From: Macrostomum lignano
Lineage: Eukaryota
NCBI GenBank assembly: GCA_002269645.1
Contig: NIVC01002444.1
Coordinates: 1-64,000 of the forward strand
Reading direction: 5' to 3'
Length of the DNA stretch: 64,000 nucleotides
Shown here: piece by piece, positions 5,911-59,641 of the stretch
How positions within the stretch are numbered: position 1 is the stretch's first letter
Layout of the letters: each line of letters opens with the position of its first letter
Notes under the pieces: model-generated
The model's database searches: none
What the model was told of the DNA's origin: nothing
Seen by the model: the letters and a program-made list of their open reading frames with translations, nothing else
Made by a program: the position numbers and the translations under genes

Positions 5911-7674
5911 ACCAATTCCAGTACCCAATATTCAGTAAAGTATTCTTAACACGATCAAAGGTTGCTACTTCTAGTAGAACTTTAAGAAATGCGCAGCTCC
6001 CGAAACTGACGAAATCATAGAATGAATTTTTCCGCCACTCGATTTTATATCCTGTGTAGTACAAACTCGAAGACTGTCCTTTTGTCTGCCCCTTCAAAGC
6101 AGCGAAAAAATGGTGGATTAGAGCAATAATCTTCGCAATAGCTACTGCTTTTAAAGATGTTTTAGCTTCGTAATTTTCCCTGCCGCGACCAGTGAATCTC
6201 CCTTTCTGCCCATCCCAATATAGCTCGTGGTTCCTCCGTCCGCTTCCCGATTCGGATTAATTCTGTTTTATTCCCTGGATTAAGCCACTACAATACCAGT
6301 CAATCAATAGTGTCAGGCAACTGATGCTCATCGTTGGTACTGCTTCCTGGACTACACCCCATCCCTCAGGAATATTGGGTTATTTTTGCCGGGCCAATGG
6401 CTACAGTAGATTATTTATGCAATCCCCTATCTTAATTCATTAATTCCTAAGAGCCAGTGTATGTAGCTGGCGTGCGCTAGACGCCAAAATGTTCTAAATG
6501 AACGAATTTCTATCAGCTGTAGATACTCGTAGCAGTCGTGAATTTGAACTGCTGGATGAACAAAGGACGACGATAGTCTTGGTTCCATAAGCGGACTTGT
6601 TGATTCAGCCAACAAGTAGCTAAGCGTTTTTCATTGCATCAGTCATGGAATCCGAAGGACTAAGTAACTGGAGTGGAAAACAGCCTTCCATTGCGGTCGT
6701 GGAGGACTCTGAAAACTTTAGTGCCTGGAGTGGAAACAGTTGACGAATTTCATAACCTAACTATAGACTCTGGCTTCAAGTGGGAGCTGAAGGGGGTCGC
6801 TACCATGGTCCGCAGTTGATCGATGTAGTATTCGAGCGGCAAATTGGTCGTCTGTCAAATCGGACACGAAATTTTGAAACGTAAACCATTCGGCCAAGCG
6901 TGACGGACCGACCGTGGTGCCATGCAGTCAGGGATGAACTGCAGGCCTTGAACTGCATTCGAATCTATTTTTATCTCCTACTAGACTTTTTTACGCTATA
7001 AAATTAAAAGTGCATTGGATTTCTGCACCAAATACAAGCAGAATTGCCCGTATTACTTGTAAGCATCCAAGTGGGCGCAACTGGGGAACTGGGGAATGGG
7101 TGAGCGAATGTGCGTTAAATTTCGGTTGTAATTTTCTCCAGATTTTGCCCCTTTAATCAGAATTAAAAACTGGGCAACTCTGACTGACTGACTGACTGAC
7201 AGACTGCTTCTGACTTTGATGTCGATGGCAAGCTGAGTGCGCAGCGTCCTTAAAGCCTGTCTGTTGCTGGGCTAAACATTCTTCTTTTTTAAAGAGTAAA
7301 ACCGGCATAAAATGCAGCAAACCCTTGAAGTTACTGCATCTGAATCTGCATCTTGAAACCCAATGGTAGGGCAGGGGCCAGTGCTTTCAGGGCTGCACGC
7401 GTGGAAATATAGGAAACAAAAGCAACTGCAGTAGAAGTGATTGTAAAATTTTGATAGAAGGAAAAGAATACCATGCGAAGAGGGGGAGTGAAGCCGGCCA
7501 TTTGGAAATTAATCAATTTATTCTGGCTCCAGGTGCTCTCCATTCTCCAATGCTCCAATCTCTGATGGCGATGATCGGGACTGAAAATCAAAGCTTCAAG
7601 AAAACTTCAGTCAAATGCTGCCGTTTGGGCGGAGTGGGCTGGATATTGAGAAAGCTGCCGACCAGGGGTCCCAA

Positions 7675-7975
7675 ACCGATAGGTCAGGAAAAGGCCCAGG
7701 CACCCCAACCAATCGGTCAGGAACATGCCCAGAGAACCCAACCAATCGGTCAGGAACATGCTCAGACACCCCAACCAATCGGTCCGGAACATGCCCAGAG
7801 AACCCAACCAATCGGTCAGGAACATGCCCAGAGAACCCAACCAATCGGTCAGGAACATGCCCAGACACCCCAACCAATCGGTCCGGAACATGCCCAGACA
7901 CCCCCACCAATCGGTCAGGAACATGCCCAGAGAACCCAACCAATCGGTCAGGAACATGCCCAGAGACCCCAACCG
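7675..7975 (+). repeat. 33-bp minisatellite (ccaaccaatcggtcaggaacatgcccagagaac), about 9 copies
   Basis: Tandem periodicity; explains the 11-aa repeats in six ORFs. Confidence 0.95.
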
Positions 7976-8024
7976 TCTGGCTTTGTCTGACTCCCAGCAT
8001 AGCAGCATTTTCGTAACAACTTAC

Positions 8025-8891
8025 CAGCGTTGGTCTGCGGTACCAGGTCTCCGTAGCCTACTGTTGTCATGGTAACCAGCGACCACCAGAAGCCGTCGAA
8101 CATGGAGGTGAAACGCGAGTCGGTGCCCTGTCTGCCACCTCCGTTGCCCCCGCCGCCACCGCCCGGGCACTTTGAACAGTCAACGGCACCTCCCTTGCCA
8201 CCGCCGCCTCCGCTGGTCGGCTCGTTGCGGGATTTCTCGCAGAAGAAGATCAACGTGCTGAACAGCAGGGTGCCCAGGGCAACAAATACTCCCATGAGCA
8301 TGAGGTCTCGGAATGAGGTGCGCAGAGTATAAATGAGCACCTGCAGGCCTCTGTAGTGCCGGCCGATTCGAAGCAGCCGCATGAACAGCGCGATCTTCAG
8401 GAAGGAGATGTACTCAGCCAGGCCGAAATCGTTACTGTCCGAGAACTCGATAATGCCAAAGAAGAACTTCAGCAGCTCGTTCACGTAGAATGGCAAAATA
8501 GACAGCATGTCGATGATAGTGTAATTGTTTTTAAAGTAGGCCAGCTTGTTCTTGCAGAAGAGCAGGCGGACGAAAAAGTCGAACGTGAGCACGCCGAAAG
8601 CAATCCAGTCTGGGAAGGTGAGCCAGTCCACCTTGATCTGCGGGTTGGCGTTCGTGTGGTTTCCGTACCAGGCCGGATGCTTGGCCGAGTAGAATGCAAT
8701 CTCGCCTGGCGACATCGGCCGCTGAAATCGATCCGAGGTGCTGGCCACGAAGCTGAACACCGTGTAAAGCACCGTGACGCTCAGGATGACGGCGTACACG
8801 GCCGCCGGGAAGCTGGACGACGGATGGTCCAGAATCTTCCAGCAGCGACGGCGCAGAGCGGCCAGGGCGTCTTTCACGCGCCGGCGCCATC
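8025..8891 (-). CDS. Shaw: Kv3/Shaw-like K+ channel exon encoding S1-S5 and pore helix/selectivity filter
   Basis: Acceptor ccgcag|ga at 8892/8891; donor g|gtaagt at 8025/8024. W.ILDHPSSS pre-S1, NNYTIIDMLSILPFY (S3), RHYRGLQVLIYTLRTS (S4-S5 linker), FWWSLVTMTTVGYGD (filter). Confidence 0.95.
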
Positions 8892-21444: not shown

Positions 21445-21862
21445 CAGGGGCGTAGCCAGGAATTTTGATTGGGGGGCCGTGAGTTAGGGGGCGCCAGCTT
21501 CTTATAGGGGGGGCGCCAGTTTCTTTTAGGGGGGGGCGCCAGTTTCTTATAGGGGGGCGCCAGTTTCTTATAGGGGGGGGGGGCGCCAGTTTCTTATAGG
21601 GGGGGGGGGGCACCAGTTTCTTTTAGGGGGGGGCGCCAAGGCCAGAGTTTTCTTTTAGGGGGGGGGGCGCCAGTTTCTTTTAGGGGAGGGGCGCCAGTTT
21701 CTTTTAGGGGGGGGGCGCCAGTTTCTTATAGGGGGGGGGGGGCGCCAGTTTCTTATAGGGGGGGGGGCACCAGTTTCTTTTAGGGGGGGGGCGCCAAGGC
21801 CAGAGTTGGTTGATTGGGGGGGGGCCACGGCCGTCCTTGCCCCCCCTCTGGCTACGCCCCTG
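21445..21862. mobile_element. MITE with perfect 15-bp TIRs (CAGGGGCGTAGCCAG) and an internal G-run repeat
   Basis: caggggcgtagccag at 21445 and ctggctacgcccctg ending 21862. cctagcc occurs on both flanks (right copy offset by 3 nt, so the TSD is imperfect). Interior is about 21-bp gccagtttcttataggggggg repeats. Confidence 0.8.
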
Positions 21863-26246: not shown

Positions 26247-26680
26247 CTGATTTAAAGACCGTTTCGATCGACGTTGCTGGATTGAGATTGGCCGGATATC
26301 GTCATCTAAATAGACGAAGAGATTTTATTCATAGTTAGTTACTTGATTATCTACTTTTTTAATTTTTTATGGAAAAATGTATAGAAATAATTAGAGACAA
26401 ACTCTTACCATATGCACTGGGGCTGGATTGGCGTATCATTATTTATTCGGTCAGAATGTTTTTTTAACAGGCGGCCCAAATATCCAGCAAGTTTTAAAAT
26501 CGAAATTAGGACCAAACACTGAAAAAAGTGAGAAGAAATTAGCATCGATCAATAATTATAAACGTATTTTTATCGACAATTGAACCATAGACAGAAATTC
26601 CGTTTGACTGTTAATGTTAATAAATCATCATTCACCCTTCATTCTCGTTTAGTGTATCCTTCGTTTGTTGCACGAATAAA

Positions 26681-28560
26681 GGGGATGTCAACTTAAGCAC
26701 CAGAATGGAGCCCGAAGTTAAGCTCCGGACCAAACCGACTGCAATCGATAACTTGTCGGCCCAGACGACTAGAATCGCCGAGACATCTCATCCCAGGCCC
26801 TGACTTGGGGTCCCAGGGGATAAAGGGGATAAAATGGGGATTTTGTGTCAACTTAAGGCTCTGGAATGGAGCCCGAAGTTCAGCTCCGGACCAAACCGAC
26901 TGCAATCGATAACTTGTCGGCCCAGACGACTAGAATCGCCGAGACATCCCATCCAGCTTTAAGTGACGAAGCTCCATTCAATTCGAATCTCGCATTTGCG
27001 GGTGTATTTCATTTCAGCTATTGTATATTGTTTGTTAAGTAATAAAAATGATTTGCTCGTATCGAAATAATGTTAAAAACGCCGATCTTAAAACTCACTT
27101 TGTAAAAATTAACAGGTAAATTAATTTGGTTATTAGTAAGCAGAATTTTTGGACGATAAACCGAAGCCATGTATATTGGTAAAATAAAGCATGTCATGCA
27201 AAGCAGCAAACGTTTTTAAGCAAATAAAGTCACGCCTCTTACGCATAGCTCAGTAAAATCATAATTGCAAAAGTTTCTTAGTCCTAAAAATGTTTTTGGG
27301 TTTAAGTTCCTTGCTGCAGTAAAAATGCTGCGAATTTTTAGTTAATTGTGAGTCTGAAAGAAATTGAAAGAACTAATGCAAAGCTTTTGATATTTGATGA
27401 CAGTCTGAATTATCTTTGAACACATGTAACCTATGGTACGTAAAGAATGCGTGAGATGACATTTTTCTTAATCTGCATGTCCCTTAAAATCTGCAATACA
27501 AAACGTACAGTACACTCGTTTAAAACAATTGTAGTTTAAAAGTGCAACGAGCACGATGCACTCAGGCTCACGTACGAACGGGTTATAGTCTGACGTAACT
27601 TTCATGTCGTCAATTCTCGTCCACACACAGCTCAGTACGCTTGCTGTGAAATGTCCCGACTTCAGTCGGCTTCCATGGTGTGATATTGTGGCCACTGGCT
27701 TACCAAGTGTAGAAACACCCCCTTACCTTAATGAAAAGCTTACAGGAGTTTGAAGCTTTATAGGTGGCCATCCATACTAGCACGATCAAGATAAATCAGG
27801 GTAAACTTTCCAGGTGTTACTACGATCTCTTGATTACAATCGCCAAGGCAATTGGCATCCGAACATTTCTCTGCCTGAGGAGCGACAAAAGCGCAGAAGA
27901 TTTTGTCTAAACTGACAATTGAGCGCTCAAACCGACAGAGAGGAATGAAAATCACTCTGTTATTGATTGTACCAACAGGAACTTCAGCACTTGTGCGCTG
28001 GCAATCCCGACAAGTTTGAATGAGTGAAAATTCTGTGAAAGCATCTGATGACAGAAATTCCAGATGTATTAGAAGCGTTTGAACAAATTCGTTGACACAA
28101 TGGCGCTGATTTTTTTAAATGAATCTGGATGTTGCAACCGAACTGCCGTTAACAGTGGAGTGACTGTTGCAGACCGCTGTTGCATCCCCGTCAGAAGACG
28201 AAGCAGCTCTCGATGGACTTAGTTGACACAAAATCCCCATTTTATCCCCTTTATCCCCTGGGACCCTAAAGAAAGGGAGCCGGATGGGATGTCTCGGCGA
28301 TTCTAGTCGTCTGGGCCGACAAGTTATCGATTGCAGTCGGTTTGGGCCGGAGCTGAACTTCGGGCTCCATTCCAGAGCCTTAAGTTGACACAAAATCCCC
28401 ATTTTATCCCCTTTATCCCCTGGGACCCCAAGTCAGGGCCTGGGATGAGATGTCTCGGCGATTCTAGTCGTCTGGGCCGACAAGTTATTGATTGCAGTCG
28501 GTTTGGTCCGGAGCTGAACTTCGGGCTCCATTCTGGTGCTTAAGTTGACATTCGATCCCC
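26681..28560. mobile_element. Non-autonomous DNA transposon with long TIRs (about 270-340 bp, built of about 160-bp tandem subunits); TTAA-like flanks, Kolobok-like by terminus
   Basis: 26681-26950 is the reverse complement of 28219-28560. Termini GGGGAT...ATCCCC; right flank ttaa, left flank taaa. Confidence 0.8.
27500..28140 (-). pseudogene. Decayed ubiquitin-specific protease (USP, peptidase C19) catalytic-domain fragment inside the TIR element
   Basis: Motifs in order: NQRHCVNEFVQTLL (QDE-box-like), TCRDCQRTS, SLDKIFCAF, KCSDANC, PGKFTLIYLDR, VATISHHGSRLKSGHFTA..WTRIDDMKV (His box). Frameshifts and stops present; Cys box absent. Confidence 0.65.
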
Positions 28561-31500
28561 TTAAAGGGGAGCACCCGACGAAATGGCAATAAACTTGAGG
28601 ATTGGTTGGTTGTCTTACAGTTTTAATGATAACAACAAATCTAATAGTTATATCGAATTGAGGGAATTTTGGACCAAAAAATGACTTAAAATTTCTGTAG
28701 CGGAGAACAATAATAAAACTAGAATAACGTAATTGAGAGCGCCCCCTTCTCTATGTCTCTCCTCTGCCTGCATTGCCACCATCATGTAGAACCCTCTTTC
28801 CCTGACACCCTATATGGCTGTGATATCGACTGACACCTTTCCTTGACACCCCATATGGCTGCGATATCTGACACCATTTTGGTATTTTAAATGCTAATAA
28901 GTACACTTTTGTTTCTTTGCGTGCTCATATGCTACGATTTTTTAAATTCCAGCGAAAATAAAAAGCGAGAGCACGATCATGCAACTCGGCTCAACTCTGT
29001 ATTTAATTTAATTTCCTCAATTTAATACTTTTTCTTCCTTGTCGATTGTTGCTTGCTTGCCTGGGTTTTAGCATGCTTAGCAACATATTTGTCCATTCGT
29101 CAAAAATGTTTGATAGACTGTAGTCCTAGTCCTATGGTCAGTATGGTGAAGCTGGTATTAAGTTGTTATTGATGTTGTTGCAATTTGATATTAATTAGGC
29201 CTAAACTTATGATTTAGCTAGCTAGGCCTATTATATTTTTAAAGAAAGGATAGTCCAACTAAAAAACCAGAGAAAGTGGCCTTTCCACTGAAAATTAAGA
29301 GCAAAAGATGACAGAAGGAAGAGTGAGTTGGCAAAACTAAAGGGAGTAAGTATCAACAAGTCCAAGGCTCAAGGGCAGGTGGGCTAAAAGAAGAGTCATG
29401 TCTAGTCATGTAACAGGTGTGATTCTATTGCCTATATTCAAAATCCCACTGCTGTTACCAAAAGTTGTAACAGGCCTTTTAGCTCTCTCTAGAAATCCTA
29501 CTAATGCCACCAAAGTTGTCGTAGCGGTGCTCCTCTACGATACGGAATCCCACCGCTTAGTCACCAAAGTTGTCAAAGGGCTAACCTTCTGTCTTTATAA
29601 ATAATGCCACCAAAGTTGTAACAGGGTACTCTTCTATTTTCTATTATTGAATATCCTGTCACCAAAGTTATAACAGGGGTTAATTCTTCTTACTGATCTT
29701 TCTGGTTATTACTGGTAGCGCATGTACTTCTATTGGTAGCGTATGTACTTCTATTGGTAGCGTATGTACTTCTATTGTACTTTCTGGCCTGAGCGGTCTT
29801 TAGGCACTGTCTATTCTATTCCTATACCCTTCTAAAGATATTATTCTCTCAGTCCTGGGCGTTTCCTGGATCAGAGGGTCACAGCCTTATGATATGAGGC
29901 GTTTTTCCTGCCCTGAGGCGATCTTACTACTTTGTAGTGCTTTCCTGCCCTGAGGCGATTCTCGCTCTTTAGCGGTTTCTGATACTCCCAATTTGGGTCT
30001 TTATCCTCTAAGAAATGATTAAGTCTTAAAGCGATATCAATATTTTTGAATGAACTAAGTTTGCTTATTAAAAACCGAGAGGCGGCAAAACGGTTGACTC
30101 TTCAAGCCTGCTCAGCGCGTCTATTTATACTAGAAATTCGTTACGGTTTAAACAAAATAATAATCGCGGAAATATTTTCGCAAACCACAACATTCAAACA
30201 AATATATATATTTCGCGCGGATTTGAATAAAGGTTTTCTAAGAAAGGCAAACATAGAACGAGTAAAATTTAAAAGTATTAGAGCTATTATTAATGCACTG
30301 TTTCAGTCACAAGACTCACAACTCAAAGGAAATGTGGATGGGACTAATTAAATATAAAAAAGACTAACAATAGTAATGAAAGTTCAGTAGAACTTACAAT
30401 TACAATAGAATTTAATAACCATTGGCATTTATACAAGTTATAATATAGCCTACCTACTATAATGGCTATACTAGTAATAATATTTATTAATATACAGTAC
30501 AGTTATAGTAGGCCTATGCTTATTTGGCAATGTCCTAGTTTCCCAAATTAAATTTTAATCTAAAATTTAAAAGAAACAAACTAAAGCAAGTTTATTAAAG
30601 ATTTAAAACATGTCTTAGGTCTTAAAAGATAGGACAGGACAAGACCAGGTGTATCCATTGTTATAGTCAGCTCCACCCTGACATTAAAACTGCATAGCTG
30701 GAGCTTCCTGACAATGGCTGTAATTCTATGAGTTGGCTATTAGATGATTAGTTGCTAGCCAATGCATAGTTGACTCAGCTATCAGCATCAACTATTAATA
30801 GCACCAGATTGTGGTGACTGATCTCAAGGTCATAGAGGTTGGCCAATGGCCGCAAACTGGCAGGAGATACAATATCTACAGGCATTCAAGGTTGTCCAGG
30901 CATGATTTTTGCTGAAAATAAAAAAAATTAAGTCAAAATAATTTAATACAGGAAACTAGGCCTAGGACATTAGGCCTACTAATTATTTATATTATTATAT
31001 ATAACTTTATTTATCTAGGCTTGCCTAGACCAAATTCTAAGTGACATAAAGCTTGATAAAAATATTTTTTAAACATAAAACAATATTTATATTTTTTATT
31101 GTGTCAAATTTACTTATAGGGTACTATCATATATACACAACCTCCTAATTTATACTGGCCATTTGACTTACTTTTTGACCAAAACTGTGACTTATCTATA
31201 AAAGAAATGTAAGCATAAATTAATATAATTTTGGATAAATAGTAAGTTTTATGGCTATATTAATAAGGCTAAATGTCTTTTCATTTAATAAGTACAATAT
31301 CTATGTTTTTGGGTAGGCTTTTTTGTAATTTACCTTGGCTGGGCCCCTTGCTAGCTGGCTAGATTAGCTGTTTTAACCAGGTGTTGCATATGTATATAGT
31401 AATACTATTAAAAGATATAAATAGTTTATAAATTCATTATCATTAATTTAACAACATTTTTATTGTTCAAGTTGTTATTTTTGTTTGTTGATTTTGTATT

Positions 31501-32939: not shown

Positions 32940-35089
32940 TATCCATTGTAGGAATAAAGGATATTACCAAACATTTACTGTTAAAGCCAAGATATATTTT
33001 AATTCAAAAAGTCATCTTTAAGGCTTATACCTAACCTATCAAATAGTCAAATTAGTATTATTTAAATTCATCAAAAACTAATTTTAAATTGAATAATGTA
33101 CATGCTTTTGCTTTGTCACTCTATAATAATAATAAATCTTGCTAGCCTACCCCATCCAATCTAGTACAATAGACAAATAGGTTTAGTCTATTCAATTAAT
33201 GAATATATCCCAAGAGGAAAACAAAACATGTAGCTTTCAACAATGAATAAATTTATAGAGAGAAGCAGCAATGCATGCTAACACAAAGTCTAGAAAACTT
33301 TAAGCTGCAAAATGGTTCCCTTATTTATAAGTTATACACTTAGACTAGGCCTATAAAGCATTATTTATAGGGTTCTATAGGGTTCTATTTATGAGCTGCA
33401 ATCTAATTATTGTCAAATCTGCATCTAATAAAAAAATAAATATCTTAGTTAAGTGCTTATAATTAGCATTGAAATTAATTAAATGATCATATAAGAGTGA
33501 TTAATTCTATGCTCCTAGCCTTAGTGTAAAGTATCTTTTCATTTTCCTATATAAGGAATGCTCTGATCACTGGAACAAAAAAATTGATATTGTAGTACTA
33601 ATATACAGCTTTAGAGACCTTAACTTTTAACTTGTAAACAAATTGACTAGTTTATAAAATCTGAAACACAACTATGAAACTAGAGTTCAAGTACTTTTAG
33701 AAGTTTCTTTTAAGCCTTTTTGCCAAAACATGAAATTTAAGATGGTTCACTGCTACCATTACTTTTAGCTAGTGTTATTACTAGAGTCCTTCTAATGCTA
33801 CTTATAGTAGACAAATCGCGTGCTAACAAAAATTCTAGCCTAAGTTTTGTGAAAGATGCAGAAAAAATTGACAGGTAGGTGAGATTTTTTATATGGGCAG
33901 TAGATTTTTCAGTTTTGGGCCTCTCGAACCTTGCACAACTGAGTAGGGTTGCATTACACTGCCGAGCCGCATTTAGAGTCTGTTTTATTGGATAATTTAT
34001 GAATGGCACGTCTATAAAAATAGTAAAATTGGCAGCAGAGTTTGGCGCGCCGGCTCTGCGTGGCCAGGCTATTAAAAAGCAAGCTGATTGGGGAGGCGGG
34101 GGTTTGGAAAGGTGGGAGAATTTACGCCTTCTCTCATCCCCTATCCAGCGCAGCCCGCGATGCACTTGAAGCGAGAGAGAGAAAACTGCATTGTCCCACT
34201 TTCTCTCTCATTCCCCAATTCTCTTCTTACTCCTGCAGCCAGTGTATTGGTATGAGCTGCAACTCTTTCTCCCCGCCCCTGTTCCGGAAATAAACTGCCA
34301 AAACCTAGTCCCAGTCGTTATAAAACAGTTTTAACAATTGAGTTGCAGATGCGCAGAACTGCGATGTGGATAGGCTATGTTGAAACTATGTGGGTAGCTG
34401 CCTGATATTGATTTTTACTTCTAATAGGCGTCAAAAATTATCCGCGCTTAAAATTATTAATGTCCCATTATGTCCTCCATCAGCAGCTGAAGCTGCTTAT
34501 ACATGATGTGCCATGCGGGCGTGACTACCTATCAAGGTGATTGGTTTCACGCGTCACTATCAAGGGTTTTCCTACTCATACGCATAGCGAAACCGTCTGC
34601 TTCATGGTCGCTGAGGCCCAGGTGGCTGTCCTACGTTTTTCTCACTCTGGATTGTTGCGACCATTGACTGCCAACAGTTGCTAAAGAGCTATTGCTCCGG
34701 CCTATCTGCAGATGTAGAGCTCTGGGCTCGATGCGGATTTATTCTCTAAGTGCTTCTGGTTTCTGCTGCTGCTGCTGGGATAGCGGCTAGCTGCTGCTTC
34801 CGATGGCTATGGTGAGCCTGCTTGCGCACTGCTGAATAAACCTAACCAGATGTGAAAGTAATTGAGGAAGTGCGTTAGAAGGACAGAAGAGGATATTATT
34901 ACAGAGAACAGAAACAGACGGGAAACTAAGTTCATTGTCATTACATTATTGAAGTAAAATTTTAATATTAGATGCGCGTGCGAACTGAGTGGGTGTTATT
35001 GACTTATTTTATAAGCAGTGGAAATACAAAATGTGACTTTATAGTTCCACACAAAAGAAAACTCGTATTTCGAGGCACTTTCTATGATC

Positions 35090-35765
35090 TCAATGCTCTG
35101 TCGAAGTGCTCAAAGCTCTATCAAGAATCTCAAAGATCTGTCGAAGATCTCAAAGCTCTGTCGACGATCTCAAAACTCTATGGAAGATCTCAAAGATCTG
35201 TCGAAGATCTCAAAGCTCTGTCGACGATCTCAAAACTCTATGGAAGATCTCAAAGCTCTATCGAAGATCTCAAAGCTCTGTCGAAGATCTCAAAGCTCTG
35301 TCGAAGATCTCAAAGCTCTGTCGACGATCTCAAAACTCTATGGAAGATCTCAAAGCTCTATCGAAGATCTCAAAGCTCTGTCGAAGATCTCAAAGCTCTG
35401 TCGAAGATCTCAAAGCTCTGTCGACGATCTCAAAGCTCTGTCGAAGATCTCAAAGCTCTGTCGAAGATCTCAAAGCTCTGTCGAAGATCTCAAAGCTCTG
35501 TCGACGATCTCAAAACTCTATGGAAGATCTCAAAGCTCTATCGAAGATCTCAAAGCTCTATCGAAGATCTCAAAGCTCTGTCGAAGATCTCAAAGCTCTG
35601 TCGAAGATCTCAAAGCTCTGTCGAAGATCTCAAAGCTCTGTCGAAGATCTCAAAGCTCTATCGAAGATCTCAAAGCTCTGTCGAAGATCTCAAAGCTCTG
35701 TCGAAGATCTCAAAGCTCTGTCGAAGATCTCAAAGCTCTGTCGAAGATCTCAAAGCTCTGTCTTA
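35090..35765 (+). repeat. 20-bp minisatellite (gatctcaaagctctgtcgaa), about 33 copies
   Basis: Tandem periodicity; produces three spurious ORFs. Confidence 0.95.
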
Positions 35766-37364
35766 GATCTAAAAAACTGCTCTATCAAAGATCTCATTGC
35801 TCTGCGAAGTACCTTGATGATCCCAGCCAACAGCAATTGAATAGAAGATCAATGAGCTTCACTAAAAGCCAGATAGATACAATGCTGGCACATGCACTCA
35901 ATGAAGGTGTCGAATGAAGGCGCGGCACATGATCAAGTATGTCGTTGAAGCGCATCGCCCTTGCTATTAGCTATTAGGTAAAGCCGTTGCATGGCGTTGA
36001 GAAGCCAGCACTGAGGCCGGGGCAACATCCAGTTTGGTAACTTTTTGCTTGCTGCCGATGCCTTAATAGCGGAAGCTTGGCAGCGTATGTTTGCTCGCAT
36101 CGCTGCCGCGCACACGGATGCGGCTAAACACACATCAACACACTACTGGCGCATCAACGTGTTTGTGCTGATGCATTCCATTCATTGACGGCTAGTTTCA
36201 TTATATGGGGAGGGGGAGTGGCTGATGCGGCAGGACTTTTCGCAAATTCATTGGCATTAGCCCACAGGCCACATAGCAGCCGGAACTTGAAACACGGGCG
36301 CGTCGTGTCGCCCGTCCTTTGAAATTTGTGGGGCATTTAGCTTTGAGGGAGACTGGAATGCCCCCTCCCCGCAAGCAATCGCTTATTGTATGTGTGCACA
36401 CGGAGAGAGAAGGGCTGTCCTTACCGCGAAATCGCTAATGGGATATGGTGATGAGGCTGACAGGTAAATAATACTTGCTGACATTCAGCTGCCAACTCTC
36501 TCTCCACCTGTCTCTACTATCGTTTTACTGTCCTTGTATTCGCAGTTGCTAATGCAAATTGCTATAGGTCGGAAATCGCACAGTCCCAGGGCAACAATCT
36601 ATTTTGATTTCCAATCAGTTTTTTTGGTTTGTTTTCTTTTTAATAGAAAAATCGACTAAATTTAAGTCACTCTTCAGTGTCTGAGGCTGTAGATGGGTGC
36701 CCCTCCTGCCTCTCCTGCCCAGCTGGTAATTTGCCGGCACAATGCTACTCGCTGCTGGAAACCTCTGCCTCGCTATTGGTTGGCTGTCCTAGTGGAATTG
36801 TTGTGGGGAGAAGTATTTGGGGGGAGGGAGGGAGGAGTAACAGTAAAGGCTGTAGCAAAAGAATCCAAGCTTATGCTGCTCGCAGTCTGACTGAACAAAT
36901 TTGCCTTGTTGTGTAACTTCCAATCCATTGGCCCTTGTTCTGATTTATTCCCTATTTAATTCGTTGGACTTACCATTTTTTAAGTATTGATTCTCGTCTC
37001 GTCTACTCGACTTTCAATGAAATTTGACGCATCGAGCGAGCCAGTGAAATTTCAAACGGTCTGGTCAATCATTGTTTGATTAATTGGCAACATCAATTCT
37101 AACAGGTTCAGAGGCTATTTTACCTACTCCTGCATCCTGCCCGAGTTTGGGGTAAGACAGCTGGATAATGCGAGGCAATTAATCAAAATATTGATGTAAA
37201 TTGCATAATTACGAATATTGATCGTTGCAAATATTCGTTAATTTGCTGGTTCTTGTTGCCGTGTTTCTCATGTGTGAATTGGTCATTGGTTCACTATCTA
37301 CTCAAATTAGTGTCTACTTGAGCGTATCTTTTATCTCAATGTCCACTCCATTCTATTGTCTAGG

Positions 37365-39340
37365 ATGTCCCTTGGTTCACTGTCCACTCCGGATTGTCTA
37401 TGATGTCCCTTGGTTTACTGTCCACTCCGGATTGTCTATGATGTCCCTTGGTTCACTGTCCATTCCGGATTGTCTATGATGTCCCTTGGTTCACTGTCCA
37501 CTCCATCTGATTGTCTAAAATGTCCCTTGCTTCACTGTCCGATCCATCTGGTTGTCTAGGATGTCCCTTGCTTCACTGTCCGATCCATCTGGTTGTCTAG
37601 GATGTCCCATGGTTCACTGTCCGATCCATCTGGTTGTCTAGGATGTCCCATGGTTCACTGTCCGATCCATCTGGTTGTCTAGGATGTCCCTTGCTTCACT
37701 GTCCGATCCATCTGATTGTCTAGGATGTCCCATGGTTCACTGTCCACTCCATCTGATTGTCTAAAATGTCCCTTGCTTCACTGTCCGATTCATCTGGTTG
37801 TCTAGGATGTCCCTTGCTTCACTGTCCGATCCATCTGGTTGTCTAGGATGTCCCATGGTTCACTGTCCGATCCATCTGGTTGTCTAGGATGTCCTATGGT
37901 TCACTGTCCACTCCATCTGATTGTCTAAAATGTCCCTTGCTTCACTGTCCACTCCATCTGATTGTCTAAAATGTCCCATGGTTCACTGTCCGATCCATCT
38001 GGTTGTCTAGGATGTCCCATGGTTCACTGTCCGATCCATCTGGTTGTCTAGGATGTCCCATGGTTCACTGTCCGATCCATCTGGTTGTCTAGGATGTCCC
38101 ATGGTTCACTGTCCGATCCATCTGGTTGTCTAGGATGTCCCATGGTTCACTGTCCGATCCATCTGGTTGTCTAGGATGTCCTATGGTTCACTGTCCGATC
38201 CATCTGGCTGTCTAGGATGTCCCATGGTTCACTGTCCGATCCATCTGGTTGTCTAGGATGTCCCATGGTTCACTGTCCGATCCATCTGGTTGTCTAGGAT
38301 GTCCCATGGTTCACTGTCCGATCCATCTGGTTGTCTAGGATGTCCCTTGCTTCACTGTCCGATCCATCTGATTGTCTAGGATGTCCCATGGTTCACTGTC
38401 CACTCCATCTGATTGTCTAAAATGTCCCTTGCTTCACTGTCCGATTCATCTGGTTGTCTAGGATGTCCCTTGCTTCACTGTCCGATCCATCTGGTTGTCT
38501 AGGATGTCCCATGGTTCACTGTCCGATCCATCTGGTTGTCTAGGATGTCCTATGGTTCACTGTCCACTCCATCTGATTGTCTAAAATGTCCCTTGCTTCA
38601 CTGTCCACTCCATCTGATTGTCTAAAATGTCCCATGGTTCACTGTCCGATCCATCTGGTTGTCTAGGATGTCCCATGGTTCACTGTCCGATCCATCTGGT
38701 TGTCTAGGATGTCCCATGGTTCACTGTCCGATCCATCTGGTTGTCTAGGATGTCCCATGGTTCACTGTCCGATCCATCTGGTTGTCTAGGATGTCCCATG
38801 GTTCACTGTCCGATCCATCTGGTTGTCTAGGATGTCCTATGGTTCACTGTCCGATCCATCTGGCTGTCTAGGATGTCCCATGGTTCACTGTCCGATCCAT
38901 CTGGTTGTCTAGAATGTCCCATGGTTCACTGTCCGATCCATCTGGTTGTCTAGGATGTCCCATGGTTCACTGTCCGATCCATCTGGTTGTCTAGGATGTC
39001 CCATGGTTCACTGTCCGATCCATCTGGTTGTCTAGGATGTCCCATGGTTCACTGTCCGATCCATCTGGTTGTCTAGGATGTCCTATGGTTCACTGTCCGA
39101 TCCATCTGGTTGTCTAGGATGTCCCATGGTTCACTGTCCGATCCATCTGGTTGTCTAGGATGTCCCATGGTTCACTGTCCGATCCATCTGGTTGTCTAGG
39201 ATGTCCCATGGTTCACTGTCCGATCCATCTGGCTGTCTAGGATGTCCTATGGTTCACTGTCCGATCCATCTGGCTGTCTAGGATGTCCCATGGTTCACTG
39301 TCCGATCCATCTGGTTGTCTAGGATGTCCCATGGTTCACT
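37365..39340 (+). repeat. 41-bp minisatellite (atgtcccatggttcactgtccgatccatctggttgtctagg), about 48 copies
   Basis: Period 41; older 38-bp variants at the left edge. Confidence 0.96.
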
Positions 39341-40669
39341 GCACTGTCAATAACGTTCAAATCTGTAGTTCCATTTATTATATTGCCTCAGTCGATGGCC
39401 ACTTGTGTGACTACACTTTGCAGGCTTTTAGGAGTATATTTTAATCCTCGCGAGTTTCCAATTGACTTGAGCTGCTTTGGAGTCCCTATCACAATCTCGC
39501 GCTCCCTGATACTCCGTGTGTGAGCACACAATGTTGCTGCTGGCCTCGTGTGTTTTCTTCCCCACCAAGGGCGGGAACCAATTGGTATTAGTTAATAAAT
39601 CATACTTAAAGCACTTTATATGCAGGTTTTGCGTCTGCGAAATGAGCAAAGCGACGTCTGCGCAGCAGAACCTCGACCTAAATGTAATAATATGACTTGC
39701 AGCATACCGAATCCTTATTCTGTCTGTCGCAAGCTGCTCTCTGCTCGCTACCCCCCGCCATAGACTGAAGCAAAAATCAATGAGTCCAATCCCGTCCCTG
39801 CTCAATTCTGAATCCGCAGCCGGAAGTGAACCATTCCCCGTCGCAGAAAGTCTGTGTATGTACCTAAGACCCCTGTCTGTCCTGGCTAAAGCGAGTATTG
39901 GAGCTTGAGGTTATCACATTAAACTGCTACCAGTTGAGGCCGGGGTCGGCGCTGCTGACTGAATCTGCGGCTGCTGCAGCATGGCCTAGTCCGAACTATA
40001 TTGCATCGGATTGGATAAGATAAAAGCAAAGTTTTCTCCCCTACCCCCCTGCCCGGTCCTGTTGCGCCCCTGTTAACAGGAGCTTCCAACTCCATATACT
40101 TAGTTCCTTCGCAGTGCGCGGCACAGTTTAATCTTTCGGCCTGGTAGATCGGGGGGGGGGGGCTTGAAGGGAGGCGGTGGGCAGAAAAGAAAGAAAAATG
40201 TAAGCATGATCGCCCGGGCTGGCATGGATCGTGTGTCGGCAACATCGCTTTTCAGTGTGTAGTGTATGCTGTGTGTGTGTGTGTGCACAGCGAGCAAACA
40301 GCAAAGTGGCCGGAACACACCCTATTTTGGCTGCCGCTCTTCCATCCTGCCATCCTCGATTTCCCGAATGCCAGCCTCCGCTATAGAGATCCAATCCGGC
40401 GCCTCATCATCGCCCATTCTTTGCAACTGGCAGAACCCCGTGGCATACCATGTCTTCTAAACGTCCTAAACATTCGTATCAGTAGCTAAAATATGCACGT
40501 TTGGCGAAAGACAGTTTACAACTCCTTTTAATTAAGTATTTCAACTCGATTGGTTTTTCTAATGCCAGAGTGAAAGCTGGCGATTTCGATGGTAAGATGA
40601 GTGATGTCCTGAGTTGTTGTGTTAATACTATTGTGTACTTTCATTTAAAAGTTTTGTATGAAACTTGAT

Positions 40670-41785
40670 AAAACTGCTTCATTGATCAAACTGCAACTAC
40701 TGTTTATCAAACTCCAGCTACTGTTTAAACTCCAGCTACTGTTTATCAAACTCCAGCTACTGTTTAAACTCCAGCTACTGTTTATCAAACTCCAGCTACT
40801 GTTTATCAAACTCCAGCTACTGTTTAAACTCCAGCTACTGTTTATCAAACTCCAGCTACTGTTTATCAAACTCCAGCTACTGTTTATCAAACTCCAGCTA
40901 CTGTTTATCAAACTCCAGCTACTGTTTATCAAACTCTAGCTACTGTTTATCAAACTCCAGCTACTGTTTATCAAACTCCAGCTACTGTTTATCAAACTCC
41001 AGCTACTGTTTATCAAACTCCAGCTACTGTTTATCAAACTCCAGCTACTGTTTATCAAACTCCAGCTACTGTTTATTAAACTCCGGCTACTGTTTATCAA
41101 ACTCCAGCTACTGTTTATTAAACTCCAGCTACTGTTTATCAAACTCCAGCTACTGTTTATCAAACTCCAGCTACTGTTTATCAAACTCCAGCTACTGTTT
41201 ATCAAACTCTAGCTACTGTTTATCAAACTCCAGCTACTGTTTATCAAACTCCAGCTACTGTTTAAACTCCAGCTACTGTTTATCAAACTCCAGGTACTGT
41301 TTATCAAACTCCAGCTACTGTTTATCAAACTCCAGCTACTGTTTATCAAACTCCAGCTACTGTTTATCAAACTCCAGCTACTGTTTATCAAACTCCAGCT
41401 ACTGTTTATCAAACTCCAGCTACTGTTTATCAAACTCCAGCTACTGTTTATCAAACTCCAGCTACTGTTTATCAAACTCCAGCTACTGTTTATCAAACTC
41501 CAGCTACTGTTTATCAAACTCTAGCTACTGTTTATCAAACTCCAGCTACTGTTTATCAAACTCTAGCTACTGTTTATCAAACTCCAGCTACTGTTTATCA
41601 AACTCTAGCTACTGTTTATCAAACTCCAGCTACTGTTTATCAAACTCCAGCTACTGTTTAAACTCCAGCTACTGTTTATCAAACTCCAGCTACTGTTTAT
41701 CAAACTCCAGCTACTGTTTATCAAACTCCAGCTACTGTTTATCAAACTCCAGCTACTGTTTATCAAACTCCAGCTACTGTTTATA
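40670..41785 (+). repeat. 21-bp minisatellite (aaactccagctactgtttatc), about 53 copies
   Basis: Tandem periodicity. Confidence 0.96.
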
Positions 41786-52154: not shown

Positions 52155-53726
52155 AGACTGGGTCATACAATAGAGACTGTCCATCTCCTGGTCATAGAGA
52201 CTGGGTCATACAATAGAGACCTCCATCTCCTGGTCATAGAGACTGGGTCATACAATAGAGGCTGTCCATCTCCTGGTTATAGAGACTGTCCATCTCCTGG
52301 CCATAGAGACTGGGTCATACAATAGAGGCTGTCCATCTCCTGGCCATAGAGACTGGGTCATACAATAGGGACTGTCCATCTCCTGGTCATAGAGACTGGG
52401 TCATACAATAGGGACTGTCCATCTCCTGGCCATAGAGACTGGGTCATACAATAGGGACTGTCCATCTCCTGGCCATAGAGACTGGGTCATACAATAGAGA
52501 CTGTCCATCTCCTGGCCATAGAGACTGGGTCATACAATAGGGACTGTCCATCTCCTGGTCATAGAGACTGGGTCATACAATAGAGGCTGTCCATCTCCTG
52601 GCCATAGAGACTGGGTCATACAAAAGGGACTGTCCATCTCCTGGTCATAGAGACTGGGTCATACAATAGGGACTGTCCATCTCCTGGCCATAGAGACTGG
52701 GTCATACAATAGAGACTGTCCATCTCCTGGCCATAGAGACTGGGTCATACAATAGAGACTGTCCATCTCCTGGTCATAGAGACTGGGTCATACAATAGAG
52801 GCTGTCCATCTCCTGGCCATAGAGACTGGGTCATACAATAGAGACTGTCCATCTCCTGGTCATAGAGACTGGGTCATACAATAGAGGCTGTCCATCTCCT
52901 GGCCATAGAGACTGGGTCATACAATAGAGGCTGTCCATCTCCTGGTCATAGAGACTGGGTCATACAATAGAGGCTGTCCATCTCCTGGTCATAGAGACTG
53001 GGTCATACAATAGAGGCTGTCCATCTCCTGGTCATAGAGACTGGGTCATACAATAGAGGCTGTCCATCTCCTGGTAATAGAGACTGGGTCATACAATAGA
53101 GACCTCCATCTCCTGGTCATAGAGACTGGGTCATACAATAGAGACTGTCCATCTCCTGGTCATAGAGACTGGGTCATACAATAGAGGCTGTCCATCTCCT
53201 GGTCATAGAGACTGGGTCATACAATAGAGACTGTCCATCTCCTGATCATAGAGACTGGGTCATACAATAGAGGCTGTCCATCTCCTGATCATAGAGACTG
53301 GGTCATACAATAGAGGCTGTCCATCTCCTGGTAATAGAGACTGGGTCATACAATAGAGACCTCCATCTCCTGGTCATAGAGACTGGGTCATACAATAGAG
53401 ACTGTCCATCTCCTGGTCATAGAGACTGGGTCATACAATAAAGGCTGTCCATCTCCTGATCATAGAGACTGGGTCATACAATAGAGGCTGTCCATCTCCT
53501 GGTAATAGAGACTGGGTCATACAATAGAGACCTCCATCTCCTGGTCATAGAGACTGGGTCATACAATAGAGACTGTCCATCTCCTGGTCATAGAGACTGG
53601 GTCATACAATAGAGGCTGTCCATCTCCTGGTCATAGAGACTGGGTCATACAATAGAGACCTCCATCTCCTGATCATAGAGACTGGGTCATACAATAGAGA
53701 CCGTCCATCTCCTGGTCATAGAGACT
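52155..53726 (+). repeat. 43-bp minisatellite (gagactgggtcatacaatagaggctgtccatctcctggtcata), about 36 copies
   Basis: Period 43. Confidence 0.96.
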
Positions 53727-55095: not shown

Positions 55096-55785
55096 TCTAA
55101 TCTACTCTATCTAATATATCAGTCAAACCCACACCTGATGCTTCGTAATCGTAACGTTTATCCCTGAACTCGACGAACCGAAACGCCCCCCCCCCTGGCG
55201 CCCCAGTCAGCGAGTTCCTGCGTGCGTGCCCGCAGCTCTCGCCCCGCTCCCCACCCGCCATTTTGATCGCGTGAACGGCTGAAATTCGAATAGCGAATCT
55301 CAGTCAGATGCCGAGGCTTCCGCTGGCCCTTTTCCTAATCTCTATTCTCTCCTCCCCTTTGTTGCTGCGTTGAACTTCCTCTTCTGCCTTTTTGTTTGTG
55401 TTGTTTTTGTTGCCTAATTAATTTTGTCCCGGAGTTCGAATCTCCCGCTCTCCCGAGGCGTCAGTGTCGTGACCCGGGCCGCACTCCTCTTTATTCTGTG
55501 CACCTCTGTTCACAATGGTTCCTGCCCCGGTCTTAATTGAATTCAATTTGCTGGCTTTGGCGCCCTCACGGCACGCCATCTTGATTTGTTTCTCCTTTAT
55601 TCTCTGCTTCTTCTGACAAAGGACTGCATCATTTTGTTGTCAAACTTTTTTTTCCGGCAAAAAAGTTAGATTTTGGGCAGGAAATTTCCTAGCAATGCTG
55701 ATGACTTATAACCGATTCTTTCAGATTATTGAGATCTTTCGTAAGCTTTGCCAGTGCAATCGATTTTTTTCTTTTTTAGGGTGCG

Positions 55786-56732
55786 AAATTTCTGCTTTGT
55801 AGAAGCACTTTGCTCAAACAGTGTTCTACATAAATAAATTTCTGCTTTGTAGAAGCACTTTGCTCAAACTGTGTTCTACATAAAGAAATTTCTGCTTTGT
55901 AGAAGCACTTTGCTCAAACCGTGTTCTACATAAAGAAATTTCTGCTTTGTAGAAGCACTTTGCTCAAACAGTGTTCTACATAAAGAAATTTCTGCTTTGT
56001 AGAAGCACATTGCTCAAACTGTGTTCTACAAAAAGAAATTTCTGCTTTGTAGAAGCACATTGCTCAATTGTGTTCTACATAAAGAAATTTCTGCTTTGTA
56101 GAAGCACTTTGCTCAATTGTGTTCTACATAAAGAAATTTCTGCTTTGTAGAAGCACTTTGCTCAAACCGTGTTCTACATAAAGAAATTTCTGCTTTGTAG
56201 AAGCACTTTGCTCAAACAGTGTTCTACATAAAGAAATTTCTGCTTTGTAGAAGCACATTGCTCAAACTGTGTTCTACAAAAAGAAATTTCTGCTTTGTAG
56301 AAGCACATTGCTCAATTGTGTTCTACATAAAGAAATTTCTGCTTTGTAGAAGCACTTTGCTCAAACAGTGTTCTACATAAAGAAATTTCTGCTTTGTAGA
56401 AGCACATTGCTCAAACTGTGTTCTACAAAAAGAAATTTCTGCTTTGTAGAAGCACATTGCTCAATTGTGTTCTACATAAAGAAATTTCTGCTTTGTAGAA
56501 GCACTTTGCTCAATTGTGTTCTACATAAAGAAATTTCTGCTTTGTAGAAGCACTTTGCTCAAACCGTGTTCTACATAAAGAAATTTCTGCTTTGTAGAAG
56601 CACTTTGCTCAAACAGTGTTCTACATAAAGAAATTTCTGCTTTGTAGAAGCACTTTGCTCAATTGTGTTCTACATAAAGAAATTTCTGCTTTGTAGAAGC
56701 ACTTTGCTCAATTGTGTTCTACATAAAGAAAC
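55786..56732 (+). repeat. 49-50-bp palindromic minisatellite (aaatttctgctttgtagaagcactttgctcaaacagtgttctacataaag), about 19 copies
   Basis: Period 50 (55861 to 55911); internal inverted repeat tgtagaagcact...agtg-ttctaca. Confidence 0.95.
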
Positions 56733-58185
56733 TTCTAGTCCGTATTCTCTCCCTTATCTGCAGTTTTCAATCTCCTGCCCTTATCTCATAGGAGTTGAAT
56801 TTGTAGCAAAAGTTTTGGAAACTGCATGCAGAACCAAACTGACTGCAGTTTACTTAACACTTCGCCACTCTCTAGCGCAAGTGAAAACCATACAGCACTG
56901 TATTCACTGTATCCATGCGCAGGCGTTTTCCCACCAGCGGCACTGCAAGCTGTCTGTCTGCCGCCCTCGCGGCTTCAGCTTATATGGCCTTCTATTTTTC
57001 TCCATCCGTTCCAAGGCGCGCTTGAGAGAGGAATAATCAGAGATGAAGCCCCCCCCCCTCTCTGCGGAGCTCGGAATCGACGAAGTGGTTGGAAAGCAAT
57101 AACGCGGCTACAGTTGTTGTTGCAATAAATTTCAACACTGGTCCTGCCTCAGTGTAGGTGGTGTGGGGATGTAGGGGCGGGGGGCCAGCAATAATCAAGA
57201 TGATACGCCAGCAAAGGCGCAACTAGGATATTCGGACGATTTTCGAGCTAAATCGATTTTTTGAAAGCGTCCCTGCTGCAATGCTGCGGTCAAGTAGGGG
57301 CTGGAGAGACCGGCTTGTATGCTAGATGAAGCCTGCTCACTGCTCACCTAGGCGCAGCTCCTCCCGGCCTGTCTGTTATACAGAAGAGAGGAAAAAATCC
57401 CAAACATTACGGCTTGCTCCCGTTTTTGATTGACAGGCGCATAAAAAAGGGAAACTATGCAGAGAACTCGGTTGATATAATGACGGCAGGTGAGATGTGT
57501 TGAGGCTGGTGCACGGTGATTCCAATGATAGAAGAGCTATGGGTGAGTCTATATTGGCTGCTGTGTCGAAGACACGAGAGCCACTTTTCTGGCCTCTTCC
57601 AGTTTGTCAAGTCGAGGCATGTTCTGCGAGCGCGCGGTTCTACTCGTTCTTTCGTGTCTCTGGGAAGCTGGGGAAAAGAAAACTGTTGGGGTGGGTGGGG
57701 GTTATGGGAGAGTTGGATGCGCGACCGGAAGGCCCCTGGCAACAACAGAAGGAAGTGAGAGGAGCCATTGCAAAGTTAAGAGCAAATGAAAGAGTGAGAC
57801 AGAGAATTGAAGAAGGATGCAAGATGACGAATGCTGTGGCCACAGCTTCTTTTAGTAGATTTTCCCTTTCAATATAGATTCTACAATTCTACTCCCAGTT
57901 TGACTGACAAGTCGGGAACTGAGACGCGGCGCTTGCGGGAGAATTGCGTGACTTTCGCCGCCTCCCTCCCTGCCTCTCCGTCACTCTCAAGCCCCCCCCC
58001 CACTCAGTTCCTCTATTGTTCCTACTCGCTATCCAAACCTATTTCTTTTCCTTTGTGTTGAATTCGGGCTACAAAGAGAGTGCTAATGCGCTAATTATAG
58101 CCGCGCTAAAATGTGCCAGCGCCAAACTAGGAGGGGGGGGGGCATCATCATTAGGGCACACATACTCGAATCTCACACTGCATTT

Positions 58186-58353
58186 GGGGATTATTCTGGC
58201 TTATTCTATATATGGAAGTGTTCCCTCCTATCTGTCTCTTGCAGTTCAGGGCTGCCTCTATCAGGGTCAGGGGATTATTCTGGCTTATTCTATATATGGA
58301 AGTGTTCCCTCCTATCTGTCTTTTGCAGTTCAGAGCCGCCTCTATCAGGGTCA
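58186..58353 (+). repeat. 84-bp tandem duplication spanning the TCF intron/exon boundary
   Basis: ggggattattctggc... at 58186 and 58270; each copy contains a pyrimidine tract plus cag. Confidence 0.95.
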
Positions 58354-59641
58354 GCCGTCCAGCCAGCGCCAGCAGCACCAGCGCCAGCACCAGCACCAGC
58401 ATCAGAGCCTGTCCCGTTCGGCGCTAATTGGCAGCACCACAGCCGAGCTGCGTTTGAAAGCTGGTCAAACAGTGGCGCCAGCTCAGCAGCACCAGCACCG
58501 GCAGCAGCAGCAGCAGAACCACGTGAAGAAGCCGCTCAATGCGTTCATGATCTTCATGAAGGAGCAGCGGCCCAAGGTGGTGTCGGAGTGCACGCTGAAA
58601 GAGTCGGCCGCCATCAACCAGATCCTTGGCCGGCGCTGGCACTCGCTCAGCCGTGAGGAGCAGGCCCGCTACTACGAGCTGGCCCGCCAGGAGAAGGAGC
58701 AGCACGCCAAGCTCTACCCAAACTGGTCGGCCCGCGACAACTACGGCGGCATTGCGCGTAAACGCAAAAAACAGAAGCTGAGATTTTCTCACTCTGTTGG
58801 CTTGAATGCGACCGGTTTGGGCGGCGGCGGCGGAGTTGGGGGCGACGGCAATCTGACTAGCGTTACTATGGCAACCTGCGGAATGAGCGCTGCCAATGCC
58901 CGGTGTAGCAGTCTTGGCAGTAGTAGTGGCGGCGTTGGCCTCCCGACCTCTTCTATTGCTGGCGCCGTCTCCACTCCGTCGTCGGCTGTTGCCGCTGCTG
59001 CCGCCCACGCGGCCGCCGCTGCCGCAGCTGCAGCCGCCGCGGCGGCCGCCTCCGCCGCCAAGAAATGTCGCGCAGTGTTCGGCCTGGAACGCCAGGATCT
59101 CTGGTGCAAGCCGTGCAAGCGAAAGAAGAAATGCGTCAAATTTGCCTCCGCCGATTGTTGCGAAAGCCAGTCGGTGCCGTCAACGCGGCACTCGCTGCTG
59201 CCCTCGGCGTCGCTGCAGTTGCCGCCCCCGCTGCCGCCGCCGATGAAGCGCTCTCGGCCGTCGACTCCGTGCAATGCCCAGAACTTGGCGACTGCCAGCG
59301 CCTGCTCTACTAATAGTAGCAGCAACAATCATAATTGTAACAACTTTTTCTGCTCGCCGAACGCCAGCAGCGGCGACGCCGGCGGCGGTTCAGGCGGCGA
59401 CGACGAGGACGAGGACGACGATGACGATGACTGCGACGAAGAAGAAGACTGCGACGAAGAGGACGCCGAGGGCGAGGGCGAGGGCGAAATCAAAGGCGAG
59501 AGCGTCGGGTGCGATGTAAAAATGTTGAAAACCTCGCCAGCCTCCGCCGTTCACTCGGATGGCGGCTATTCGCCATCACTGCCGCCTCCTCCGCCGACGC
59601 ACTGTCGGGCACTGGAGGCGCACGGCACGCCATCCTGCTGA
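58329..59641 (+). CDS. TCF/LEF: TCF/LEF exon with HMG box, basic tail, C-clamp and acidic C-terminus
   Basis: [17 protein letters not shown]...[18 protein letters not shown]...YYELA...[12 protein letters not shown]; RKRKK; [28 protein letters not shown]. Phase-1 acceptor ttttgcag| joins exon 1 in frame (about 677 aa); extra exons not excluded. Confidence 0.95.

Follow-up and report, generated by a model that had tools for sequence, protein, structure and literature searches.

A disabled ubiquitin-specific protease gene in a probable internally deleted TIR transposon of Macrostomum lignano

Proteases that act in the ubiquitin and SUMO systems, such as Ulp1 and OTU, have been taken up by transposons time and again, and the benefit to the element is not understood. 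Ulp1 (C48) is carried by Mutator-like and Ginger elements, OTU by Helitrons and Ginger, and UCH by Helitron-like elements of the HLE2 type (PMC2836005, PMC11417382). Ulp1 and OTU cargo is well known, e.g. from Ginger elements (PMC2836005), and a 2024 survey of Helitron-like elements described UCH as "stably included", almost exclusively in HLE2, with enrichment in two subgroups (PMC11417382). For USP/UCH genes in transposons with terminal inverted repeats (TIRs), no paper was found in full-text literature searches, with Repbase and Dfam outside the search. The locus considered here lies in the genome of Macrostomum lignano, within a 64,000-nucleotide stretch of contig NIVC01002444.1 (assembly GCA_002269645.1, positions 1 to 64,000), which is referred to as the window. 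Positions 26680-28561 of the window probably represent one non-autonomous, internally deleted copy of a TIR transposon, whose full-length family members would carry a compact and divergent USP of ~275 aa. The original prediction for this locus, made from the sequence alone, had regarded USP cargo as unusual; this view needs some qualification, as UCH has been reported in Helitron-like HLE2 (PMC11417382), with no report found for TIR elements.

Inverted arms around a truncated protease gene

A repeat search of the window detected two inverted arms, 26685-26958 and 28278-28551, which are 99% complementary over 274 nt (98.54% over 274 nt when arm is compared with arm by self-BLAST). This complementarity is far beyond chance, and the long inverted arms of the original prediction are thus real. 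Both arms are composed of tandem copies of a 161-bp unit. In the sense of the USP gene, which is located on the minus strand, the left arm (26680-26958, plus strand) is the 3' TIR; it contains the terminal AGGGGAT, one full unit at ~26686-26846 and a second unit that is cut at 26955-26958, in total ~1.7 copies. The right arm (28221-28561, plus strand) is the 5' TIR and consists of two full units (2.0 copies over 28221-28550) and the terminal ATTCGATCCCCT. Arm length is 279-341 bp. The inner ends are unequal, and the outer ends are symmetric, with AGGGGAT at 26680 and ATCCCCT at 28561 as a shared motif and a 4-bp indel just inside the element ends. Units within one arm are 91-94% alike and the two arms 98.5%, indicating that the duplication of the unit predates the divergence of the arms.

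The hexamer GGGGAT occurs three times per 161-bp unit. It is found in the left arm at 26681, 26816, 26825 and 26836, and as ATCCCC in the right arm at 28233, 28244, 28253, 28395, 28406, 28415 and 28555; the 1.9-kb element contains 12 of the 42 GGGGAT/ATCCCC hexamers of the window. A terminal motif that recurs in sub-repeats is often seen for transposase-binding sites, and the repeated GGGGAT would constitute putative sites of this kind. The predicted secondary structure of the unit is not special (z = 0.02), and an Rfam scan of the window returned nothing. A 24-mer from the arm had no match in the metagenome, viral and prokaryote contig collections, and an exact look-up of the ORFs (open reading frames) encoded in the arms found nothing on record.

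Between the arms, the minus strand contains an intronless USP/UCH (peptidase C19) pseudogene at 27537-28218, which corresponds to residues 130-359 of P0121, a 362-aa relative from an environmental contig. Its His-box piece alone matches the Pfam UCH profile (PF00443) with 19.3 bits (E 9e-4), and the score rises to 22.7 bits once the frameshift near 27761-27776 is read through. The fully frame-corrected translation (231 aa, one stop masked) scores 27.5 bits (E 2.9e-6, profile positions 49-237 of 254) and thus passes the curated cut-off of 23.9 bits. In an end-to-end tblastn alignment, this reconstruction shares 35% identity with P0121 residues 130-359 (E 1.6e-46) and 36% identity with the contig of a second relative, L002 (E 2e-41). 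The best PDB match of the once-corrected fragment is the catalytic domain of USP8, with FTLIYLDRASMDGWPPIKLQTPVSFSL aligning with VLLVHLKRFSYDGRWKQKLQTSVDFPL. The remnant keeps the Q-box, the four zinc-ribbon cysteines, the His box and the Asp box, including the catalytic His and Asp: SHHGSRLKSGHFTAS and WTRIDDMKV align with SHHG..GGHYTAS and W.LMDDSRV of P0121. The claim of an intronless minus-strand USP fragment with its motifs in the right order is therefore well founded. Downstream of the remnant follow ~580 bp of AT-rich non-coding interior (26959-27536, minus strand) with short ORFs only, in which a six-frame Pfam scan detected nothing meaningful.

The gene is disabled, as had been proposed, by two frameshifts and one stop. 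The first frameshift is located in a homopolymer run at 28110-28117 (T7 on the plus strand, A7 on the minus strand), upstream of which homology to P0121 and L002 continues in another frame from 28218 to 28117, with VHRELLRLLTGMQQRSATVTPLLTAVRLQHPDSF aligning with P0121 residues 127-161. An apparent stop at 28115-28117 was rejected because the homology runs on to 28218 in the other frame, as expected for a frameshift. A second frameshift at 27761-27776 is apparent from tblastn segment pairs in different frames (28111-27770 and 27758-27540), and translation in frame together with direct reading places an in-frame TAA stop at 27725-27723. This copy has no Cys box (G.RN.GN.CY.N): its homology to P0121 begins at residue 130, and the rest of the window yielded no remnant of the box. 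Without a Cys box, and with two frameshifts and a stop, the remnant makes no enzyme; judged by its sequence, the window copy is a gene fragment, dead and with no function of its own.

Position 28218, where the coding homology starts, lies three bases from 28221, the inner end of the right arm; the arm, which had been predicted to cut off the Cys box, is thus joined directly to codon 127-130 of the USP gene. Coding homology that begins where the arm ends is the signature of a deletion that fused the 5' arm to a mid-gene position. This deletion would have removed the transposase gene and the first ~130 codons (the 5' third) of the USP, leaving the 3' two-thirds between the arms on the minus strand. 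Such a copy would be inert alone and mobile only in trans, via the transposase of an intact family member.

Relatives of the protease and their linkage to the element end

When 1.84 billion representative proteins were searched exhaustively with HMMER, with a 118-aa exact window translation (27761-28114, minus strand) as query, only three real relatives were found: P0121 (E 1.1e-18), P0122 (E 1.5e-11) and P0123 (E 1.3e-6). Two additional matches, P0124 and P0125 (E 2.9e-4, shared FERSIV), were judged spurious, as neither contains a UCH domain. The C-terminal frame of the window copy, which was left out of the query, still aligns with the C-termini of the relatives (LGKPV..SHHG....GH[YF]T.SV....W...D..V....NPF). 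P0121 reaches 55.2 bits with the UCH profile and contains an intact Cys box, CGLRNIGNDCYAN; L002, the contig of P0122, reaches 49.2 bits, and its ORF, when extended upstream, includes the Cys box CGLRNTGNSCYAN. In the PDB, the family profile matched only USP15, USP2 and USP21 (E 3.5e-4 to 6e-3), and a profile search of the protein database found P0121 again and nothing more. No locus encoding a relative was found in the metagenome, viral and prokaryote contig collections. An AlphaFold model of P0121, built on a 5-row alignment, had a pLDDT of 36.5 and was too low for use.

All three relatives are intronless singletons on short environmental contigs. P0121 (contig L001) and P0123 (contig L003) originate from IMG co-assembly 3300040801 (Ga0450804_0237688 and Ga0450804_0240478), which derives from brackish microbial mats in a metatranscriptome-based study, and P0122 from the Logan assembly of SRR31252246. 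P0121 and P0123 come from one co-assembly and are 36% identical to each other; P0123 is decayed. Singleton and intronless relatives, divergence within one co-assembly and decay would represent typical behaviour of transposon genes.

L001 (1-66) and L002 (1-58) also contain a same-strand upstream ORF that runs off the contig start, ending 40 bp before the USP ORF in L001 and ~400 bp before the Cys-box codons in L002. In L002, the open USP frame begins at position 249 and has no ATG ahead of the Cys box, a hint at splicing or at an upstream partner gene.

A link between the protease and the arms is provided by L003, which contains a decayed USP copy with several frameshifts. Sensitive BLASTN of the element against the relatives' contigs gave a single non-coding match, in which the outermost 40 bp of the left arm (window 26717-26678) match L003 1851-1889 at 82.5% (window row CTTCGGGCTCCATTCTGGTGCTTAAGTTGACATCCCCTTT; L003 row CTTGGGGTTCCATTTTGG-CCTTCAGTTGACATCCACTTT). 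The local score of this match is 24; none of 500 dinucleotide-shuffled versions of L003 reached it when both strands were scored (mean 12, maximum 18). Between L003 and the entire 64-kb window there are only two matches, this terminus and the USP coding region, and the similarity ends where the window element ends. In L003, ~200 bp separate the USP from the terminus downstream of it, whose orientation agrees with that in the window, and the two USP proteins are only 32-35% identical. Gene and end are thus linked in two copies with strongly diverged USPs, which is hard to square with a one-off capture and indicates that the left arm and the interior are one unit. The right arm is best read as the 5' end, brought beside the USP by internal deletion. 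As far as these alignments reach, they argue for the USP as cargo of the family and not as a one-off capture.

Two other explanations were weighed against this linkage. The original prediction had left the choice between a deleted derivative of an autonomous family and a Pack-type capture, in which a MITE-like element (miniature inverted-repeat transposable element) with these arms once took a host USP fragment unrelated to the family. Capture would be in line with a partial, disabled fragment that is present in one copy in the window, and host proteins seem to be absent from the databases, leaving room for a host parent gene; a TCF-type exon in the same window, for instance, finds nothing above 48% overall identity. 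Yet the very diverged L003 has this terminus as well, downstream of a same-family USP and equally oriented, and the relatives are intronless orphans outside any conserved cellular USP group. A word-seeded homology search found no match and hence no near-identical parent, with a wrongly stitched pseudo-protein as query. The terminus beside the USP in L003 thus favours the derivative, and capture appears unlikely.

The second explanation assumes that there is not one mobile element but a local inverted duplication, or two insertions of the 161-bp-unit repeat that bracket an old USP pseudogene. The arms are indeed tandem arrays in a minisatellite-rich window and their inner ends are unequal. However, the two arms terminate outwards at one and the same point of the unit, GGGGAT, the left-arm terminus is linked to a USP in L003 too, the right arm lies within 3 bp of the coding homology, and the single arms lack inverted ends and duplications of their own. 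This makes a local inverted duplication or a pair of unconnected insertions highly improbable compared with one internally deleted transposon.

Target site, superfamily and genomic surroundings

With termini AGGGG...CCCCT, the element is flanked on both sides by a perfect 3-bp TAA, a candidate target-site duplication in this single copy: the left TAA (26677-26679) precedes AGGGGAT, and the identical right TAA (28562-28564) follows ATCCCCT, both by direct reading. The putative empty site with its flanks would be TTGCACGAA-TAA-AGGGGAGCACCC. With termini GGGG...CCCC (26681-28560), the flanks are TAAA (26677-26680) and TTAA (28561-28564), with one mismatch in four. In L003, the flank next to the terminus reads TTTG (TTG as a 3-bp flank).

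The right junction (28557-28569) is a near-palindrome, CCCCTTAAAGGGG, and the inferred empty site TAAAGGGGAG resembles the element's own motif AAAGGGGAT, which may be due to chance, to a target preference or to insertion into a related sequence. A hAT-like 8-bp duplication, TAAAGGGG, was considered and rejected, because the ends that it implies are not inverted repeats.

Several observations weigh against one transposon family with a USP as its cargo. The TAA duplication is short, a 3-bp match being weak alone (1 in 64 per boundary choice), and the boundaries were picked after viewing the sequence. The 8-bp direct repeat at 26677-26684 and 28562-28569 is without explanation. Self-BLAST found no second copy of the element within the window, leaving one copy only. 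A 40-bp terminus conserved at 82% beside a protein conserved at only 32-35% is unusual, and no inverted terminus was seen at the 5' end of L003, which runs into a 23-bp minisatellite. In the 1 kb upstream of the USP in L003, broken ORFs on the same strand gave an HTH_Tnp_4 match (E 1.6e-4) with 21.7 bits, below the 27-bit Pfam cut-off. Searches of L003 with Pfam, NCBIfam and the PDB, or by BLAST against a manually entered HARBI1 sequence, did not reveal a DDE domain, and no Myb/SANT-like second ORF was found in the element interior or in the part of L003 upstream of the USP, the only part scanned. In addition, the function proposed for the USP is pure analogy.

L003 is bordered by 19-bp and 23-bp minisatellites on both sides. 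That the ends are far better conserved than the USP suggests that they are under strong constraint, that the USP evolves very fast, or that elements sharing ends exchange their cargo.

The window element itself contains no transposase. HTH_Tnp_4 is the helix-turn-helix domain of DDE_Tnp_4 (IS5/Harbinger-type) transposases, and by eye, further stretches of L003 resemble Harbinger motifs in the right order; part of this upstream region may instead be a decayed N-terminus of the USP. Together, the candidate TAA duplication and the weak HTH_Tnp_4 signal make PIF/Harbinger the leading superfamily candidate, an assignment whose chances appear evenly balanced, and the transposase acting in trans would then be of the PIF/Harbinger type. 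TTAA-specific superfamilies seem a poorer match, since TTAA is found at just one of the three available flanks. The original prediction had proposed a TTAA-type element of the Kolobok superfamily, and a TTAA-targeting Kolobok or piggyBac element with termini GGGG...CCCC at 26681-28560 would carry the USP equally. Its termini begin with a purine, and TTAA flanks it on the right, with TAAA, off by one base, on the left. However, with arms that are 98.5% identical, a mutated duplication is not expected; the third flank, in L003, is TTTG, and neither the upstream part of L003 nor the element interior contains a THAP or piggyBac transposase signal. The termini of piggyBac, moreover, run CCC...GGG, opposite in polarity to those found here. 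TAA with AGGGG/CCCCT is therefore the better fit, the sole transposase-like signal, sub-threshold as it is, points to PIF/Harbinger, and a Kolobok or piggyBac origin is very unlikely.

A derivative of Helitron-like elements (HLE2/Helentron) would have been inserted between T and T with no duplication, and termini AAGGGG...CCCC do leave one T on each side. HLE2 subgroups are also the one place among transposons in which UCH cargo has so far been described, as a stable component (PMC11417382). On the other hand, TIRs of 279-341 bp contrast with the short asymmetric repeats of HLE2, no Rep/helicase signal was found in the element interior or in the upstream part of L003, and that L003 region gave the weak HTH_Tnp_4 match only. 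An origin from HLE2 is thus hardly credible, and a TIR transposon, with PIF/Harbinger as the leading candidate, remains the preferred reading of the element.

The window is unusually dense in minisatellites, with 39 rows of score >=150 in Tandem Repeats Finder, units of 20-50 bp and arrays of up to 2 kb (e.g. 37356-39341, 40685-41784, 52279-53726, 55785-56736 and 35086-35774); many of its long ORFs are merely minisatellite arrays. A G-run-rich 24-bp tandem repeat, GGGGGCGCCAGTTTCTTATAGG, is present in ~12 copies at 21487-21824, with G tracts of variable length. Two coding regions were recognised elsewhere in the window. The TCF/pangolin-type transcription factor exon at 57944-59641 (plus strand) encodes an HMG box (76 bits) followed by a C-clamp; the HMG box alone matched database proteins, and the open frame contains an 84-bp tandem duplication at 58186-58354. 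The S1-S6 region of a voltage-gated potassium channel (best PDB matches Kv3.1, Kv1.2 and Kv2.1, E ~6e-33) is encoded in one open frame at 7948-8877 (minus strand), and a 33-bp minisatellite (7670-7974) abuts or overlaps the 3' end of this frame.

The element among known systems

If this reading is true, a cut-and-paste family with its own USP would be a third, independent case of protease acquisition by transposons. An intact USP would strip ubiquitin or a ubiquitin-like modifier from the transposase, from chromatin or from silencing factors and would thereby favour transposition, a speculative role suggested only by analogy to transposon-borne Ulp1 and OTU proteases. The compact catalytic domain of ~275 aa suits biochemistry, and intact copies, once at hand, would enable a direct test of whether deubiquitination of transposase or chromatin aids transposition or blunts silencing. 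The orphan USP family also marks sequence space that is missed by current genome annotation. A bolder proposal, tentative and rather doubtful, is that the element belongs to an undescribed TIR lineage, possibly a branch of PIF/Harbinger, in which a fast-evolving mini-USP is the standing partner of the transposase and replaces or joins the Myb-like ORF2. Such a lineage would occur in at least two distantly related genomes and would still be transcribed in nature, because relatives come from a metatranscriptome-based study.

Among proteases, the remnant is closest to the USP/UCH class (PF00443, MEROPS C19; nearest structures USP2, USP15, USP21 and USP8), with which it shares the box order of Q-box, two CxxC zinc-ribbon pairs, P..L.I.L.R, His box HHG....GH[YF]T and W..iDD..V, and the PDB matches of its family are USPs only. 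The family differs from known USPs in its strong divergence (~20-23 bits to any solved USP), its lack of introns, its orphan status and its compact catalytic domain, and the window copy is disabled and lacks the catalytic Cys box.

Among transposons, PIF/Harbinger elements and the Tourist-like MITEs offer the closest comparison, with a candidate 3-bp TAA duplication (one copy here), G-rich termini, a non-autonomous deletion derivative and the weak HTH_Tnp_4 signal beside the USP of L003. In contrast to PIF/Harbinger, the arms are far longer (279-341 bp) and built of tandem units, no DDE_Tnp_4 domain was detected in L003, and a USP stands where a Myb/SANT-like ORF is usual. Long inverted arms of tandem sub-repeats and of unequal length, as in this element, are also found in Foldback-type and Galileo-type elements. 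These families, however, give 7-9-bp duplications and have other termini, and the 8-bp repeat observed here leaves no matching inverted termini.

As in the other protease-cargo transposons, a cysteine protease gene specific for ubiquitin or a ubiquitin-like protein travels as a separate ORF. USP cargo has a DNA-transposon precedent, but the published UCH case that was found concerns rolling-circle elements (PMC11417382), from which the present element differs by its long TIRs and a probable DDE transposase: here, the USP (C19) is located inside a TIR element.

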